Sequence record: MH221129.1
Direction: 5' to 3' (one strand)
Length of the DNA stretch: 64,000 nucleotides
The notes under the pieces are model-generated. The model ran no database searches and was not told the origin of the DNA. It worked only from the letters and a program-made list of their open reading frames with translations. Each line of letters begins with the position of its first letter. Within the stretch, counting starts at the first letter, position 1. The translations under genes were made by a program, and so were the position numbers. Positions 4,829-13,030 of the stretch are shown here, in pieces.

Positions 4829-5339
4829 CCGGACGGTACCGCTTGTTAGGGAAGCACTTGCGGTAGTGGATGAATCTGATATCTTCTCCAATTTGCAGCT
4901 CCAACTGTTGGATCTGTCCGCGATGTGTTACATGTGGTTCTAACTTCACGGTCGCGTAACGGTTGTAAGGATGCTTAGCAACTTTCAGACTGCTCTCAAT
5001 CAATGTGGCGATATTGTCGACAAACTGATTGTAACAATCTTCGAAGGCTAACCCGATAAGATATTGCGTTGAACGTAAAACAGCTACGGTTTCACTCTTC
5101 TTCGCAATCGGGGCACCCAACCCTCCACTGGAGACGTATACACGTTCCGCCTGAACTGTCTTTGGTGGGGCTATCAGCTGCTCTGCAACAAGCATGAGTG
5201 TTAAGTCGAATGCATCAATATAGGGTTCCAGTAACGGTTCCATCCGCGCATTAGGCATTTCCGGAACCGAATAAAAGATATCTTCGAGTGCTGTATGCAA
5301 CAGTTGTACAGTTACGGCTTCACGTTCCTTTTGGCTCAT
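4776..5339 (-). CDS. Hypothetical protein (~187 aa, MSQKERE...)
   Basis: Start reassigned to ATG 5339, which overlaps the stop of the upstream gene (ATGA). Confidence 0.75.
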   Translation of the reverse strand: MSQKEREAVTVQLLHTALEDIFYSVPEMPNARMEPLLEPYIDAFDLTLMLVAEQLIAPPKTVQAERVYVSSGGLGAPIAKKSETVAVLRSTQYLIGLAFEDCYNQFVDNIATLIESSLKVAKHPYNRYATVKLEPHVTHRGQIQQLELQIGEDIRFIHYRKCFPNKRYRPDGVDRSHCLDGIPPDLE

Positions 5340-5656
5340 CCGCAAAGCGGTAGCGTATGGGGTTGAATTGACTGACCCCCAGAAGCTAGAATGAACTTCA
5401 GCTGGTTCGAGGTATATTCTGACCACGTTTGCACAACTCCGTTTTTGTAGTATAAAGGAGAGCGATGGTGTCGGCCCAATGCCGAGATTACAAACCACGC
5501 CTCCGTGCCAAAGTGTTTTTCTGCAATCGTTAACCACTCGCGTGGCAAGTCATGCGTACCTGGATAGATGAGTTCTTGCATCGCATTTAAGATAAATTGC
5601 GCAGGTACAACACGTTCATCTTGTCCAGGGTAAAAATTGAAGAACATGCGCGTCAT
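5336..5656 (-). CDS. Hypothetical protein (106 aa)
   Basis: SD AAGGAG; AT-rich promoter-like motif upstream at ~5690. Confidence 0.75.
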   Translation of the reverse strand: MTRMFFNFYPGQDERVVPAQFILNAMQELIYPGTHDLPREWLTIAEKHFGTEAWFVISALGRHHRSPLYYKNGVVQTWSEYTSNQLKFILASGGQSIQPHTLPLCG

Positions 5657-5821
5657 CGAAAAATGCTCCTTAAGGATAATTCACGAAGATAATATCTATG
5701 CAAAATTTCTTCGAGTGGTGGTGCGCACATAAAGGCCGTTAAACGTATTTTTAATACATATCCATGGGATAGCATTACCAAATGGTATGAGCTGTCCTAC
5801 GTGCTTTACAGGAGCCTTAGA

Positions 5822-6634
5822 ATGAACGTTATAGATTACTGTCTGCGGAAAATTCGCCGCGACATTCCCGAGCCCATTCTACGGGCAGCCTTTGCTCCAG
5901 AGAACCTAAAGCTGTTGGGCATCGCAAGTTCTGTAGACAATGAGATACATCAGAAGGTCATTCGCGAATATCTCATTCCAGAAGTGTCCCGTTTGGGGCA
6001 GTATCAGGAAGTGGACTTAGAAGGGATACCTTGGGATAACGATACCCAAGACTATTTCAGCCGCGTCTATTACTTGGACGACATCAAAACTGGCGGACGT
6101 CCTATTCTTGATGCCCATATCGCAGTCACCCCGGTAGCCGGTCAGGCGTACACTTTACCACCGGCAGGTTCATATCTCGATGGTGCAACCTCCGGTGTGT
6201 TGGCCTCCACCCAACAGGTGGTTGATAGCCAATCCGCGTTCCCACGTATTGCTTCTCCGGAAGTTAACGTGCTGGGGCCAAACACGATCCGTATCAAAGA
6301 CCCCGGAATGTTTGTTTACTCAACCAAGCTGGCAGTGAAGTTTGAACTGTCTCCAGAGTTGAATGAAATCAAGCCGGCGTTTTATCCTGTTGTTGCTGAA
6401 CTGGCTGTGTACGCAACCAAGCAAGCGATTTACAACAAGATGATTTTCGACATGGACTCTGGTAAACTGGAGAACGGTATGGAGTTCGGGGCGTTTAAGA
6501 ACGTTATCGAAAACTACTCCGATGCTGGTCAGATGTTTGACGATACTGTGCCGAAACTGCAACGTGCTCTGGTTCACAACGACGACATTGGCAACCGTTG
6601 GAACTACATGTCTGGTGGTCGTTTCAAATCGTAA
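5822..6634 (+). CDS. Conserved jumbo-phage protein, probably virion structural (270 aa)
   Basis: SD GGAG before ATG 5822, phage-like codon usage, own terminator. Function inferred from context only. Confidence 0.7.
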   Translation: MNVIDYCLRKIRRDIPEPILRAAFAPENLKLLGIASSVDNEIHQKVIREYLIPEVSRLGQYQEVDLEGIPWDNDTQDYFSRVYYLDDIKTGGRPILDAHIAVTPVAGQAYTLPPAGSYLDGATSGVLASTQQVVDSQSAFPRIASPEVNVLGPNTIRIKDPGMFVYSTKLAVKFELSPELNEIKPAFYPVVAELAVYATKQAIYNKMIFDMDSGKLENGMEFGAFKNVIENYSDAGQMFDDTVPKLQRALVHNDDIGNRWNYMSGGRFKS

Positions 6635-6649
6635 GAAAAAAAAGATATA

Positions 6650-6677
6650 GTACCTCTACTCATCGGAGTAGAGGTAC
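6650..6677. terminator. Bidirectional intrinsic terminator
   Basis: 12-bp stem GTACCTCTACTC/GAGTAGAGGTAC with A-run left and T-run right, between convergent genes. Confidence 0.8.
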
Positions 6678-6686
6678 CTTTTTCTT

Positions 6687-7085
6687 TTAACTGGCCGGAC
6701 CCAACACTTCCTTTAAGTGATGAGTAATACCCGACGTCCAAGCGTCGCCTTCACGTACAGTTTCCGGTTGCGCATTTACCAGGCGGCGAAGAGAAATGGT
6801 GTGCTCTGCCAATCCTGCAATGGGTAGTACCGGACGTACGGTGGCTTGCTTAACGTAATCAACAACGTCTTCACAGCCTTCGGTAGAAGACCAGTCAATC
6901 TCTACGTTGTCGCACACTTCCAGTTGACGGGTGTTGTTCTCTTCGTCGGGGTGGAAGGTGAAACCCCATTTAATGGTGTCCAGGAGACCACGGTCAAGGT
7001 CGTTGACCACTTTGATTTTCGCGAGGGTATCCGGATGCGCCATAATCACGTCCATCGGACGCAGTTTACTTTTCATGCTGAGCAT
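6687..7085 (-). CDS. Hypothetical protein (132 aa)
   Basis: ORF with SD AGGAG. Confidence 0.75.
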   Translation of the reverse strand: MLSMKSKLRPMDVIMAHPDTLAKIKVVNDLDRGLLDTIKWGFTFHPDEENNTRQLEVCDNVEIDWSSTEGCEDVVDYVKQATVRPVLPIAGLAEHTISLRRLVNAQPETVREGDAWTSGITHHLKEVLGPAS

Positions 7086-7146
7086 CTCCTTTGGAATCTA
7101 TTACAGCACAGACTCCCTAAAGGATAGGCTGGTGCCGTAAAAAAGG

Positions 7147-7560
7147 TCAGTGTAATGTGCCGAGAGTTTTATAATGTACGTAGTTCAACGTGTGTAGCGC
7201 GTCTACCAGGATTGCGAATACTTCCTCATAAGGAAGAGTCTGGTGTAGCATAGCGTGGCACATCGACTGGAATAAAGAAGGTACAAGTTTTGGCGTAGAA
7301 GCCAAAGCCATCACTTCTGTTCTACTTAATGATTCGTTTGTTGTGATGGTTGGTACTGCGGCTCCGCAGTACAACGCGGTTCCCTCAAAAATATCCATCT
7401 TATCAAGCCATGGTCTAAACTGCGGTATATCAACCAACACAGGCATTAGGTCGTTAGCGATAATCCCACTGTAATCATTTTCGATCACTTTCAGCATTGC
7501 CGGGATTCTACCTTCATTTAAACATGCAAAGAAATCGAGTACAGGTTTAGTTTGCTTCAT
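7147..7560 (-). CDS. Hypothetical protein (137 aa)
   Basis: ORF with SD GGAGG. Confidence 0.75.
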   Translation of the reverse strand: MKQTKPVLDFFACLNEGRIPAMLKVIENDYSGIIANDLMPVLVDIPQFRPWLDKMDIFEGTALYCGAAVPTITTNESLSRTEVMALASTPKLVPSLFQSMCHAMLHQTLPYEEVFAILVDALHTLNYVHYKTLGTLH

Positions 7561-7603
7561 CGAATCTTCCTCCTATATTAACCTGCCCATGACGTGAAAA
7601 ATC

Positions 7604-7633
7604 AAAAAAAAATGAGGGGACCGAAGTCCCCTC
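7604..7633 (-). terminator. Intrinsic terminator
   Basis: GAGGGGAC-UUCG-GTCCCCTC hairpin plus U-tract. Confidence 0.75.
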
Positions 7634-7647
7634 TAAAGCATCGACTA

Positions 7648-8607
7648 CTAACCAAAAATGGTTAACCATTCCTCACGTGGGAACAAGTTATAAACGTCTT
7701 CCGGTACATTCAACAGCAGAGCCCAACCCTGGTGCCCATTCGGGTAGTACGAAACCGTTGGGCCGGTCTCTGGGTTCTTAAGGCCGTAGACTTCTTTCCA
7801 ACCAGAAAGCTCTTTGACGTACGTAACAACAGTACCGTCAGGTAGACGTACACCAGGAAGCCAACTGAACGGCCAGTAGTGTACATTGGTGTAGATAGGC
7901 AGACGTGAGATAGTCGCGTCCAGGTCTAACTCTTCGGGATGCAGTTGTTTGTAAAGCGTCTGCCACATGCAACGGTCTGTCGGGTCGGTAGGAATGTTAA
8001 ACCGTGTCCAGGTACCTTCCCCGAACGGATTATTGATATTAAACCACTCTGCCCAGCCGGCACGTAGTGCGGTCACGGCCTTGCCTACGGAGTTAACGTC
8101 GGTAGGCAGCATAAACGGCGTAACATTAAAGTCACGATAGATGTGCTGTTGCTGTTCGCCGGTAGTTATCAGGCGGTGTATCTCGCGGAGACGATTCATC
8201 TTGATGCGTAAGCCACCGTTAGTCTGTACTAAACGACGACCTGCTTCCGGATCTTCAGAGCGCTCCGTGAACAGCGCATCGCCATAGTGGCGAACGAACT
8301 CAATGCTCAGGAAACGCGTATGGTACGTTGGTGAACGGTACTCCATAAAGTCGTTCATCTGAAAATGGAAGTGGTCTAATGGCTCACCGTTTGTCCATTT
8401 GTGGGTAAACTTAAACTCGAAGTTATTGTACTGCAGAGCATCTTCTACAGCACGAATGGCTTCCCATGCGTGAATGTTCGTACGGAACATCGACGGGAAT
8501 GGATAGAAACGACGAGGGAGGAAAGGTCGAATACGGGTGGCCTCTTCAATGGTGAAGCCATCTTGGTGCATACCCTCGATTGCGCTAACGGCGTTAGGAC
8601 GGTTCAT
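7648..8607 (-). CDS. Hypothetical protein (319 aa)
   Basis: Long ORF, promoter-like motif upstream (~8670-8685). Confidence 0.8.
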   Translation of the reverse strand: MNRPNAVSAIEGMHQDGFTIEEATRIRPFLPRRFYPFPSMFRTNIHAWEAIRAVEDALQYNNFEFKFTHKWTNGEPLDHFHFQMNDFMEYRSPTYHTRFLSIEFVRHYGDALFTERSEDPEAGRRLVQTNGGLRIKMNRLREIHRLITTGEQQQHIYRDFNVTPFMLPTDVNSVGKAVTALRAGWAEWFNINNPFGEGTWTRFNIPTDPTDRCMWQTLYKQLHPEELDLDATISRLPIYTNVHYWPFSWLPGVRLPDGTVVTYVKELSGWKEVYGLKNPETGPTVSYYPNGHQGWALLLNVPEDVYNLFPREEWLTIFG

Positions 8608-10993: not shown

Positions 10994-11078
10994 TGGTGGC
11001 AGGTGAAGGACTCGAACCTACGAAGCCCGAAGGCCACAGATTTACAGTCTGCTCTCGTTGCCGCTTGAGTAACCTGCC
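10994..11078 (-). tRNA. tRNA-Tyr (GTA)
   Basis: Class II cloverleaf with long variable arm, GCAGA-CT-GTA-AA-TCTGT, CCA. Confidence 0.95.
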
Positions 11079-11085
11079 GAATACT

Positions 11086-11280
11086 TTATTCTTCGGGATT
11101 GTCGGTTGGGATGAATTTAATTTTCAAATCGACCAGCTGACCGTCTTCCTGACGAGTCCACTCCAGACTATCCACGCTACATAGGTTAATCCCCATTTGG
11201 TTCGGGATAACATCCAGCGGAAGTGGGGATTCTACTTTGCCGTCAACGATATCGGCGGCAGAAGCTTTGAAGTGTTCCAT
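11086..11280 (-). CDS. Small acidic hypothetical protein (64 aa) inside the tRNA cluster
   Basis: Strong SD GAGGAG, stop 7 nt before tRNA-Tyr. Confidence 0.7.
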   Translation of the reverse strand: MEHFKASAADIVDGKVESPLPLDVIPNQMGINLCSVDSLEWTRQEDGQLVDLKIKFIPTDNPEE

Positions 11281-11299
11281 GTAACTCTCCTCGTAATAG

Positions 11300-11441
11300 G
11301 TGCCGGTGCATCCCGGCTTGTGTACGGCGCACTCAGCTCCCTCGGGCTTATCTACAAGTACACGCTGCCAGGTGCACCGACATATACCACAATAACCTCG
11401 TTAGAAGTCACTCTGGTATTGCTCGTTGCATACTACTGTGG
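11300..11441 (-). ncRNA. Candidate structured RNA (multibranch unit plus long interrupted rod)
   Basis: Nested stems TCGGTGCA/TGCACCGG, CCTGGC/GCCGGG, GTGTAC/GTACAC; second unit closed by CCACAGTA/TATTGTGG. Confidence 0.45.
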
Positions 11442-11511
11442 TTTCACGTAAACGATTTCGCATCGGAATCCGAGTGCATATTAATTATACTAATTAACCC
11501 AAATTAATTTT

Positions 11512-11800
11512 TGAATGAGGGCGATGGACTTCTTCTTCTGAGCCCGGCCGTAAGGTCAGGTCTTAGCGTCTCCAAGCACCGCCCTCTTTCACATAACGCT
11601 GGTAGCGCTCTGGCTACCGGTGGTCGATACCACCCTAACACTGGGAACTCAATCCCATTCGGTCATCCAATTGTATTTTACAGGCGTAGCGAGGCGGCTT
11701 AATGGGCCGGTGCTTGCCTGTCCCCTAGGGACGGTTGTCGTGGAGACGCCAGTCTGTAAGTGGGGCCCTTGCGGGAAAACCCATCGCCTGTAAACCGAAC
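11512..11800 (-). ncRNA. Candidate ~290-nt multidomain ncRNA
   Basis: Three nested long-range helices and several internal hairpins; G-U extensions only on the minus strand. Confidence 0.6.
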
Positions 11801-11889
11801 GTGATTAAAATCCCAGAGTCTAATGCTGGCAATTAAGTCGGCAATAAACCTGAGGATTTCACGCATAATCATTTTCTCGTATCGAATGA

Positions 11890-12080
11890 GTCTATGACCG
11901 GGCAGATACCCAGCATCCTGTACGAGCGACCTGGTGCTTTGTGTATCTGGCTGCTACGGATTTACGGGTATACCGTAGGTCTACGCTGCGTACTGCTGCT
12001 CCCGGCCCATGTGGGACATCAACCCACACAGCCATCAGAAGGTTCACCAGTCATCCACCGTTCCCGTTGCAGCGGGCGCG
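11890..12080 (-). ncRNA. Candidate ~190-nt multibranch ncRNA
   Basis: Closing helix ATGACTGG/CCGGTCAT enclosing TGTGGG/CCCACA, CTACGG/CCGTAG and CAGATAC/GTATCTG stems. Confidence 0.5.
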
Positions 12081-12114
12081 TCAGAATTAGAGGAGGTGGG
12101 CCGAAGCCCACCGT

Positions 12115-12366
12115 TTAGCCTGCACAAAACGACTCATGGACAACACCTGCCGGCAAGTCAGTTCGACCGATACAAGTGACGCTCAGGCGTACGCCGTCAT
12201 CGCAGCCACAAATACACACGTCTTCGTAACACGAGCAGTTGTCAGCCCAATGACCGCTAGAGGGTGGAGTTGCGCGCGCAGCTTTCCGGTTAGGGGCAGC
12301 TACGACTATGGAATCAAACTCATCATAACTCACGCGGTCACGTCGTTCTAACAAATACAAATTCAT
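12115..12366 (-). CDS. Small phage hypothetical protein (83 aa)
   Basis: SD AGGAG; followed by hairpin GGTGGGC-TTCG-GCCCACC. Confidence 0.75.
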   Translation of the reverse strand: MNLYLLERRDRVSYDEFDSIVVAAPNRKAARATPPSSGHWADNCSCYEDVCICGCDDGVRLSVTCIGRTDLPAGVVHESFCAG

Positions 12367-12444
12367 GATATTCTCCTAAGCGAGCGTCTGCGGAGAGCAG
12401 ACAATATTGGCTTTTGGATATATCAAAATCTGTACGGCTAAAAG

Positions 12445-12520
12445 TGGCAGGGGAGACAGGGCTTGAACCTGCAACATTCGGTTTTGGAGACCGACGCTCT
12501 ACCAGTTGAACTACTCCCCC
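12445..12520 (-). tRNA. tRNA-Trp (CCA)
   Basis: Cloverleaf, TCGGT-CT-CCA-AA-ACCGA, CCA end. Confidence 0.95.
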
Positions 12521-12529
12521 AGAAATCTT

Positions 12530-13030
12530 TTACGTTTCAGGAACTATCACGATCTCCTGAACAGGTCCGCCGGTATTAACATCGAAGTGCATTGCAATCC
12601 GTACAGCTTCCGCTGCGCTAACACCTGCTGCCATTGCACCCATCGCGTATTCGGAACCACTTCCTACCGCAATCGGTGGTTGAACTTTTGCAAGCCAGGG
12701 AATCTCTTCGTCGCTGTACTGTCCGCCGGCATACACTTCGCCTGACTCGGTGATAACGATGTATTTCAGAGATTCACCTTTGATGAAACGGGTTGTTGAG
12801 TTTAGGCCGCTATAACCGACCATGACGCTTCGCAAAGCACCATGCACAATCTCCGTAGCACCCAAGCTACCCGCAACGCCGAAAGCAATCGCACGCTTAC
12901 CATCCACAACCCATTGCTCGTTGGACTCTGGGCGATAAATCTTTTTCGTGTTACTGTCCAGGCGTAGTGTGCCTGCAGTGAGTTGGGAATCCGATGCTAA
13001 CGTATTCCCGTCGAATGCTATCGTGGTCAT
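12530..13030 (-). CDS. HslV/proteasome-beta-like Ntn (Thr) peptidase
   Basis: N-terminal MTTIA..ASDSQ nucleophile motif and AVGSGSEYAMGAM signature. Confidence 0.75.
   Translation of the reverse strand: MTTIAFDGNTLASDSQLTAGTLRLDSNTKKIYRPESNEQWVVDGKRAIAFGVAGSLGATEIVHGALRSVMVGYSGLNSTTRFIKGESLKYIVITESGEVYAGGQYSDEEIPWLAKVQPPIAVGSGSEYAMGAMAAGVSAAEAVRIAMHFDVNTGGPVQEIVIVPET

Follow-up and report, generated by a model that had tools for sequence, protein, structure and literature searches.

We examined a 64,000-nucleotide (nt) stretch of sequence record MH221129.1 (hereafter the window), in which a first-pass annotation made from the letters alone had proposed a ribozyme-like or switchable multidomain RNA of ~290 nt on the minus strand at positions 11512-11800. 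In blastn searches window positions 11400-11900 match Salmonella phage SPAsTU (MH221129.1) at 100% identity. SPAsTU belongs to the genus Seoulvirus and is an SPN3US-group jumbo phage with a genome of 250.7 kb; the element carries no annotation in it or in most of its relatives. On the same strand lie, upstream, an HslV-like gene, a gene for a transfer RNA (tRNA), tRNA-Trp, and an 83-codon gene and, downstream, a tRNA-Tyr gene followed by the remainder of the tRNA cluster. We find that the element is an expressed, conserved folded RNA that heads the tRNA cluster of the SPN3US-like giant phages. The proposal of a conserved and structured multidomain RNA outside the described families is upheld, although the best-supported fold differs from the one first drawn.

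Distribution and transcription of the element

Searches with blastn recovered 59 phage records with the element, a second query adding the phiEaH2/Stratton/Asesino group and the Kwan/Wellington group. The element is thereby found in the genera Seoulvirus, Machinavirus, Erskinevirus and, in part, Wellingtonvirus, that is, in SPN3US-like jumbo phages infecting Salmonella, Escherichia, Proteus and Erwinia. Each genome has a single copy, whose position is constant, just upstream of the tRNA cluster, with the first tRNA directly adjoining it in Erskinevirus. Three pattern scans of IMG/VR and one scan of a metagenome returned the same lineages and chance matches only, and we found no description of this RNA in the literature. 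The comparisons below use a set of 18 lineage representatives, from which near-duplicates had been dropped.

Evidence for transcription comes from public data, namely four RNA sequencing (RNA-seq) runs of one study on an SPN3US-like phage rather than on SPAsTU itself, the contigs of which we mapped onto SPN3US in its genome coordinates (L016). The contigs continue unbroken from the upstream genes through the small ORF described below and the RNA, and a single 2.3-kb contig spans the whole upstream operon. In three of the four runs the contigs end at SPN3US 2673-2675 and pass straight into adapter letters, which indicates that many fragments share this one end; in the same three runs coverage is nil for some 50-100 nt past this end, depth being zero over 2699-2745, and new contigs begin from 2783-2821. 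In the fourth run, which is deeper, one contig spans the gap, its depth being about a quarter of that upstream. Joints are absent from the contigs across the element, which speaks against splicing. SPN3US 2675 is the C at the junction of …GGUGCUUGGAGAC and GCUAAGACC… and is equivalent to the step from 11568 to 11567 in the window; by transfer from SPN3US 2673-2675 we place a putative RNA processing site in SPAsTU at 11567..11568 on the minus strand, between …UUGGAGAC and GCUAAGACC…. As all the genes lie on one strand and one contig spans the operon, we read this end as the 3' end of the sense transcript. The restart of the contigs falls about 60-100 nt after the element.

A small ORF and a modular fold

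The 5' third of the element overlaps a small open reading frame (ORF) of 57 codons plus TAA (11699..11872, minus strand), the C-terminal half of which lies within the RNA structure. In all 18 representatives the frame is open and the TAA, within …AGCACCGGCCCATTAAGCCG…, stands at the same place; counted from the ATG, the ORF has 55-69 codons among the representatives, and the differences in length between lineages are multiples of three throughout. Gene finders had predicted it in Machina, Asesino, ChrisDB and pSal-SNUABM-04, a Shine-Dalgarno-like AGGUGA or GGUGA precedes the ATG by 7-10 nt in several lineages of Erwinia phages, and tblastn matches of the small protein are confined to the same clade. 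The N-terminal half of the product is an amphipathic helix, and its ratio of nonsynonymous to synonymous divergence (pN/pS) of 0.37-0.66 indicates that the protein is under purifying selection. In the C-terminal half synonymous divergence, about 0.5 before, drops to 0.07-0.30, with pN/pS values of 0.66-1.07, higher than in the N-terminal half; the drop points to constraint at the level of the RNA, with the frame merely staying open. The conserved frame and the purifying selection mark the small ORF as a protein-coding gene, which we predict to be translated, and the first ~100 nt of the element, being its C-terminal half, thus have a coding role as well. With a coding 5' third and transcripts that enter from the upstream genes, the element is not a free-standing non-coding RNA of ~290 nt. 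A further conserved motif lies 10-25 nt upstream of the ATG (window 11873-11900), reading CTCATTCGATACGAG in Seoulvirus and CATTAGGTGAGC, TTATTCGATGAGCG or TATCAGGTGACT elsewhere. A Shine-Dalgarno function would account for it only in part, and a role as promoter or processing signal is possible.

The structure begins within the last ~30 codons of the ORF and extends ~180 nt past its stop codon. Its conserved form is modular and comprises domain 1, formed by the ORF tail and a hairpin around the stop codon, a set of middle hairpins, and a 3' hairpin domain of ~70 nt. Over the whole modular fold 88.2% of the alignment cells are paired, against 81.0% in shuffled alignments and 75.1% for the nested fold of the first-pass annotation, and 18 pairs have changed on both sides, a number reached by none of 500 shuffles.

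Domain 1 is closed by a helix of UUUACAGGCG (11785..11794, minus strand) with CGCCUGUAAA (11677..11686, minus strand). This is the pairing UUACAGGCG/CGCCUGUAA that had been listed as an alternative in competition with an outer helix, from the words TTACAGGCG (11793-85) and CGCCTGTAA (11686-78), both of which are present. Among the 12 representatives of Seoulvirus and Machinavirus neither strand varies, even at three third-codon positions, and the helix folds whenever the 3' hairpin is formed; it shows no covariation and is missing from the six representatives of Erskinevirus and Wellingtonvirus. Within the ORF a hairpin with a GNRA cap, CCC-GCAA-GGG with a GGG/CCC extension (11763..11782, minus strand), is maintained through compensatory variants (CCC/GGG, CUC/GAG, GGAC/GUCC, GGGC/GCCC and GAGAC/GUCUC) beneath the loops GCAA, GUGA and GAGA, the exception being pEa_SNUABM_11 with the non-GNRA loop AACU. 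A second ORF hairpin, GUCCC-UAG-GGGAC (11717..11734, minus strand), occurs in the variants GUCCC/GGGAC, GUCCG/CGGAC, GUCUA/UAGAC and CGUC/GACG, and four of its five pairs have changed on both sides, in a stretch where the alignment is poor. The stop-codon hairpin (11695..11709, minus strand) holds the UAA of the ORF in its loop, alternates between CGGC/GCCG, CAGC/GCUG and CGGA/UCCG, and is paired in 93% of cells with two pairs changed on both sides. An extra closing helix, joining codons just upstream of GGUUUACAGG to the GUAAUGUGA segment, was rejected because the lineages do not share one register for it and one of the changes seen works against compensation.

Of the three hairpins that had been read from the single sequence as TGGGA/TCCCA, GGTGGT/ACCACC and GGTAGC/GCTACC, the first two belong to the conserved middle set. 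UGGGA-UUGAGU-UCCCA (11642..11657, minus strand) is nearly invariant and paired in 100% of sequences, its only changes being from G-C to G-U and from A-U to G-U, while GGUGGU/ACCACC (11619..11634, minus strand) has compensatory changes at four of six pairs and is predicted in 18 of 18 sequences folded singly. The third, GGUAGC/GCUACC (11601..11618, minus strand), is a simple hairpin in SPAsTU, but its slot is a variable peripheral module which five unrelated modules fill among the relatives. The distribution of modules in this slot (window 11601-11618 and the homologous slot in L003, L009, L012 and L014) cuts across genera: a GGCGCGGUACCUCAUACGGCCGGUACGCC module is nearly identical in members of Seoulvirus, Machinavirus and Erskinevirus, the neighbors of which carry other modules. 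Such a cross-genus distribution suggests recombinational swapping of modules inside the RNA gene. Peripheral variability of this kind occurs in functional RNAs.

The 3' hairpin domain and competing pairings

The strongest comparative signal lies in the 3' hairpin domain (11517..11586, minus strand), in which the tail of the element pairs locally rather than with the 5' end. An unbiased scan of all column pairs placed first a stack of 10 base pairs (bp) between GAGGGCGGUG (11586-11577) and the tail CAUCGCCCUC (11526-11517), with four covarying pairs. This stem of 11577-11586 with 11517-11526 is continued by CUU/AAG, a purine-rich internal loop, a 2-bp element and a terminal hairpin (11540-11562). 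In the domain 98.2% of cells are paired compared with 85.9% in shuffles, and its covariation score is 0.326 against 0.098 for shuffles and at most 0.065 for slid partners; eight pairs are changed on both sides, a count that 22 of 500 shuffles also reach. The strands of the internal loop, GGAG(R)(S)G and AAGAAG, are flanked by …GCUAAGACC and GGCUCAG… and are invariant except in the pEa4 subgroup, where both strands co-vary as GGUU with AACC. A covariance model of the domain finds one copy each in SPAsTU (window 11513-11595, 92.8 bits), Machina and phiEaH2 and none in Kwan, and on account of this single copy per genome we rejected a repeated or generic terminator motif. No intrinsic terminator is predicted in SPAsTU.

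The absence from Kwan reflects a replacement. In the Wellingtonvirus sequences (Kwan, Wellington and two IMG/VR contigs) everything from GGUGCUU onward gives way to a GC-rich hairpin and then UGUUU; at Kwan 1075-1260 (L096), and likewise in L045 and L032, this is a hairpin of ~60 nt followed by UGUUUAAAG, directly ahead of tRNA-Gly. These phages retain the small ORF and the middle hairpins despite the loss of the 3' domain. The replacement resembles a terminator and may be a functional swap for a conventional 3'-end module.

We then compared the modular fold with the nested fold that had been drawn from SPAsTU alone. All of the complementary words listed for the latter are present on the minus strand, including those of the outer helix (GGCGATGG, 11788-81, with CCATCGCC, 11527-20), of a second long-range helix (GGCGTCTCCA, 11750-41, with TGGAGACGCT, 11574-65) and of AAGCACC/GGTGCTT. 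In RNAfold the nested fold, comprising the outer helix, GGCGUCUCCA/UGGAGACGCU, AAGCACC/GGUGCUU and the three hairpins, is moreover the minimum free energy structure of SPAsTU at -107.4 kcal/mol; with a z of -2.09, and three of 100 shuffles equally stable, such single-sequence statistics are only moderately unusual. Across the representatives the outer helix does not hold: it is paired in 68%, eight of its 12 pairs are broken in some lineages, and there are zero double-sided changes. Its 3' strand AAGUCCAUCGCC (11520..11531, minus strand), although present in SPAsTU, overlaps and competes with the 3' strand of the covarying local stem. The GGCGUCUCCA/UGGAGACGCU helix is likewise 68% paired, with one compensatory pair; as ChrisDB combines a 5' strand of the pEa4 type with the majority 3' strand, this apparent compensation probably represents inheritance of modules. 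Duplex energies for the GGCGTCTCCA helix are high in Seoulvirus alone (-15 to -20 kcal/mol); in the other lineages the best duplex reaches -7 to -12 kcal/mol and its position shifts. AAGCACC/GGUGCUU is essentially invariant and hence uninformative for covariation, and its proposed GCCC/GGGC extension clashes with two helices supported by covariation, the stop-codon hairpin and the local GAGGGCGGUG/CAUCGCCCUC stem. The 3' strands for AAGCACC (11709-11716) and GGCGUCUCCA (11741-11750) lie together in GGUGCUUGGAGACGCU (11565..11580, minus strand), which is invariant, its pairing with the ORF being strong only in Seoulvirus. Covariation, which had been named as a check on the first-pass fold, thus supports the local hairpins and above all the 3' domain, and lends nothing to the outer helix; the minimum free energy fold of the single sequence is not the evolutionarily conserved fold here.

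The local 3' stem uses the tail nucleotides of the outer helix as well as the GGUG of AAGCACC/GGUGCUU, so that the nested and the conserved fold are mutually exclusive. When each was forced on SPAsTU, the nested fold came to -107.4 and the fold with the local stem to -104.9, a gap of 2.5 kcal/mol. Of the 18 representatives, 14 have the local stem in their minimum free energy fold, and in Machinavirus the nested fold costs 10-16 kcal/mol more. The claim of a mutually exclusive pairing therefore stands for SPAsTU, where the 5' segment pairs with either the internal CGCCTGTAA or the tail, but not family-wide: folding energies suggest a real bistability in SPAsTU and some of its relatives which is not conserved across the family.

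This bistability raises the prospect of a conformational switch governing read-through or processing into the tRNA cluster, in which ribosomes on the leader ORF would open the 5' strands and so tip the equilibrium between the two folds, thereby coupling the translation status of the cell to maturation of the tRNA operon. The small energy gap in SPAsTU, the overlap of the ORF with every 5' strand, the invariable placement upstream of the tRNA cluster, and the location of the RNA end in a segment common to both folds are consistent with such a device. We nevertheless consider it distinctly unlikely, as the long-range helices are not conserved outside Seoulvirus and are costly to force in Machinavirus. 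As to a leader-peptide transcription attenuator, the locus shows an ORF and alternative pairings, no predicted intrinsic terminator and no runs of regulatory codons. As Chimalliviridae these phages probably transcribe inside the phage nucleus, away from ribosomes, in which case attenuation of the classical kind could not operate.

Readings of the RNA end

In the SPN3US-like transcripts the end falls within the 5' arm of the 3' domain, in its invariant internal loop. A 3'-exonuclease trimming from downstream would not be expected to stop within the ascending arm of a stable hairpin, and this, together with the lack of a predicted terminator, makes an endonucleolytic cut or self-cleavage the simplest reading. 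The stem layout agrees with that of RNase III sites of the T7 type, having a lower stem of 10+3 bp, an internal loop and an upper stem of 2+8 bp, all supported by covariation.

Of the two possibilities, a new self-cleaving ribozyme would have the internal loop as its catalytic center, perhaps docked to another invariant element, with the cut between the C of …GGAGAC and the G of GCUAAG…. The end does lie inside an invariant loop flanked by covarying stems, the +1 G is invariant, an AGAA-rich strand stands opposite the site, and no intrinsic terminator is predicted. The putative cut would share with loop A of the hairpin ribozyme its place in an internal loop, just before a G that is invariant and facing a strand that contains AGAA; the element differs in its loop sizes and in having neither an Rfam match nor a recognizable loop B domain. 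Searches of SPAsTU and six relatives with the models for hammerhead, hairpin, twister, twister-sister, pistol, hatchet and hepatitis delta virus (HDV)-like ribozymes gave no match at E<=10. HDV-like folds are poorly found by covariance models, and the conserved sequence downstream of the cut appears too short for one. The ends are moreover slightly ragged (2673-2675), the fourth run contains uncut read-through RNA, and host RNases fit the data equally well. We therefore hold a self-cleaving element to be very unlikely, and give a similarly low weight to its more elaborate form, in which the 3' domain, perhaps docked to the invariant UGGGAUUGAGUUCCCA hairpin, would be a previously unknown self-cleaving or self-remodeling RNA whose cut triggers refolding of the leader-ORF mRNA.

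The search for known families was otherwise equally negative. At the gathering thresholds of Rfam 15 only tRNAs are found in the window, and at E<=10 nothing credible covers the element in SPAsTU (window 11000-12600) or in six diverse relatives, the families covered including group I introns, RNase P, transfer-messenger RNA (tmRNA), self-cleaving ribozymes, GOLLD, ROOL, HEARO and YrlA; the novelty claimed for the element is to this extent borne out. ARAGORN reports seven tRNAs and zero tmRNA, in agreement with the lack of an Rfam tmRNA match. A circularly permuted RNase P-like RNA, suggested by AAGUCC with a possible bulged U, by ACAG and by the word UCCACGACA, was rejected because no RNaseP_* model matches at E<=10 and the words stand in reverse order; the 9-mer UCCACGACA, which we take to be shared with M1 RNA of E. 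coli, is expected by chance and lends no support. In some of its words the tail also resembles the L11-binding region in 23S ribosomal RNA; no ribosomal RNA model matches. Host mimicry was rejected on the grounds that the 3' untranslated region has no BLAST match in any complete E. coli genome.

The first-pass annotation had also remarked on words resembling the R and S (P7) elements of group I introns (Rfam RF00028). CUUACAGACU and AGAAGAAGUCC do resemble the consensus of these two elements, with GACU and AGUC able to form a helix. The S word does not vary, but the R word CTTACAGACT is not conserved outside Seoulvirus: across lineages R reads CUUACAGACU, GAUACAGACA or CAUGCAAACU, is not conserved in Machinavirus and is absent in Erskinevirus, and at most four base pairs form in SPAsTU. 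The two words are separated by ~220 nt, so that the entire RNA lies between R and S; P3-P6 helices, exons and a split host gene are all missing, and Intron_gpI has no match at E<=10 in SPAsTU and the six relatives. RNA-seq contigs pass over the 5' boundary and across most of the element without a joint, and those of the deep run extend past the 3' boundary as well. With the core helices, guanosine-binding P7, exons and splicing of a group I intron absent or untraceable, a group I or group-I-like intron or ribozyme is effectively refuted.

In light of these observations, the reading that we tentatively prefer is that of a leader-ORF mRNA with a multidomain 3' structure, the 3' hairpin of which serves as an RNA processing site ahead of the tRNA cluster. 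On this view the locus joins a small leader ORF, which would be translated, to an RNA of three domains, and forms the 3' end of the operon ahead of the tRNA cluster. The precursor would fold with the 3' hairpin formed, whereupon an endonucleolytic cut in the purine-rich internal loop, after …UUGGAGAC, would part the upstream mRNA from the downstream spacer and tRNA transcript; a host or phage RNase, for example one acting in the style of RNase III, would be the likelier agent and the RNA itself the less likely one. In Seoulvirus the freed 3' end GGUGCUUGGAGAC might subsequently re-pair with AAGCACC and GUCUCCA in the ORF, that is, in the inner helices of the nested fold, the segment GGUGCUUGGAGACGCU (11565-11580) becoming the new 3' end. 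This would yield a base-paired, exonuclease-resistant end lying over the last codons of the ORF, and might thereby affect the stability or translation of the message.

Precedents for parts of this scheme are found in other systems. The RNase III hairpins of T7 early mRNA (R0.3, R1.1 and others) and lambda sib likewise have two stems and a conserved internal loop, lie between phage cistrons, and have the RNA end within the internal loop, processing there setting the 3' end of the upstream message. In our element, by contrast, the end is in the 5' arm, such that the upstream RNA would lose the hairpin; some 40 nucleotides of the loops do not vary between genera, each genome has one copy, and RNase III is a candidate enzyme. 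Non-tRNA structured RNAs encoded with a phage tRNA cluster are also known from T4, where the stable RNAs species 1 and 2 (rnaC/rnaD) are matured from a common precursor; the present element exceeds them in size, shares nucleotides with an ORF, stands ahead of the cluster and not within it, and is unrelated to them in sequence or in Rfam. A short ORF within a highly structured RNA is shared with SgrS/SgrT, RNAIII/hld and hok mRNA, and in such dual-function RNAs and structured small-ORF mRNAs local hairpins can face competition from distant pairings that join the coding region to the 3' end. The hok mRNA has a 5'-3' fold-back, and its 3' processing triggers refolding. Here, however, no antisense partner was found, the peptide is amphipathic and not a membrane toxin, and there is no homology.

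Several points weigh against processing at the 3' hairpin as we have set it out. The RNA end comes from assembled contigs of a related phage rather than from SPAsTU reads, and contigs cannot prove strand or end chemistry, and RNAs that are small or rare may escape them. The site of the putative cut is, to our knowledge, unlike the RNase E consensus. The refolding step has sequence support only in Seoulvirus, and AAGCACC/GGUGCUU never covaries; indeed, the change of AAGCACC to AAGCCCC in Machina and pEa_SNUABM_43, which is synonymous for the ORF, is left uncompensated in GGUGCUU. Furthermore, a plain nuclease site would leave unexplained why ~40 loop nucleotides should be invariant across genera, and likewise the invariant UGGGAUUGAGUUCCCA hairpin and CACAAUCUGA.

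This extreme invariance of the loops would be better explained by a functional folded core. We accordingly weighed the alternative that the locus yields a trans-acting structured RNA or the RNA of a ribonucleoprotein, possibly bound by the basic tail of the co-encoded small protein in a dual-function arrangement, with processing merely releasing it. Invariant single-stranded and loop sequences beside covarying stems, with a peripheral module swapped between genera, are typical of functional non-coding RNAs, and both the frozen synonymous sites in the ORF tail and the single copy per genome favor this view. Yet its partner, target and activity would all be hypothetical, searches elsewhere in the window found nothing complementary to the invariant tail or loop beyond chance, the contigs show the RNA to be continuous with the upstream mRNA, and the Wellingtonvirus phages do without the most conserved part. 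We thus regard a trans-acting RNA or ribonucleoprotein as unlikely, although it is the chief alternative to processing at the 3' hairpin.

The surroundings of the element furnished further observations. The spacer of ~230 nt after it (window 11281-11512) begins with an AT-rich, palindrome-like TTAATTAGTATAATTAAT stretch that is kept in Seoulvirus and may be a phage promoter for the tRNA cluster. In the same spacer, between the element and the tRNA cluster, the phage of the RNA-seq study carries a strain-specific insertion of ~260 letters relative to SPN3US, at SPN3US 2924-2927, upstream of the first tRNA after the element. On the other side, SPN3US 1900-2150, which is homologous to about window 12120-12370 at the start of the 83-codon gene (12115-12366, minus strand), reaches a summed contig depth of ~90,000-150,000, compared with ~5,000-8,000 over the element in the same deepest run. 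Adapter-flanked ends at 1904/1911 and 1936/1940 within this region suggest a very abundant short RNA of ~30-40 nt at the 5' end of the gene.

A processing hairpin and a structured small-ORF mRNA are each of a known kind; the architecture described here is new in combining a coding overlap, three domains, an invariant purine-rich loop with the RNA end, and a single copy heading the tRNA cluster of nucleus-forming phages. It adds a new family for RNA databases, one in which the same nucleotides carry both a peptide and a fold. Nucleus-forming jumbo phages use their own polymerases and must export their RNA, and very little is known of how they process it and form its 3' ends, or of their non-coding RNAs. 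If the 3' domain were after all self-cleaving, it would constitute an RNA-only device timing the release of the tRNA precursor and the fate of the leader message in these phages. The element offers an entry point to the maturation of the tRNA operon and to the stabilization of early messages in the SPN3US-like giant phages.

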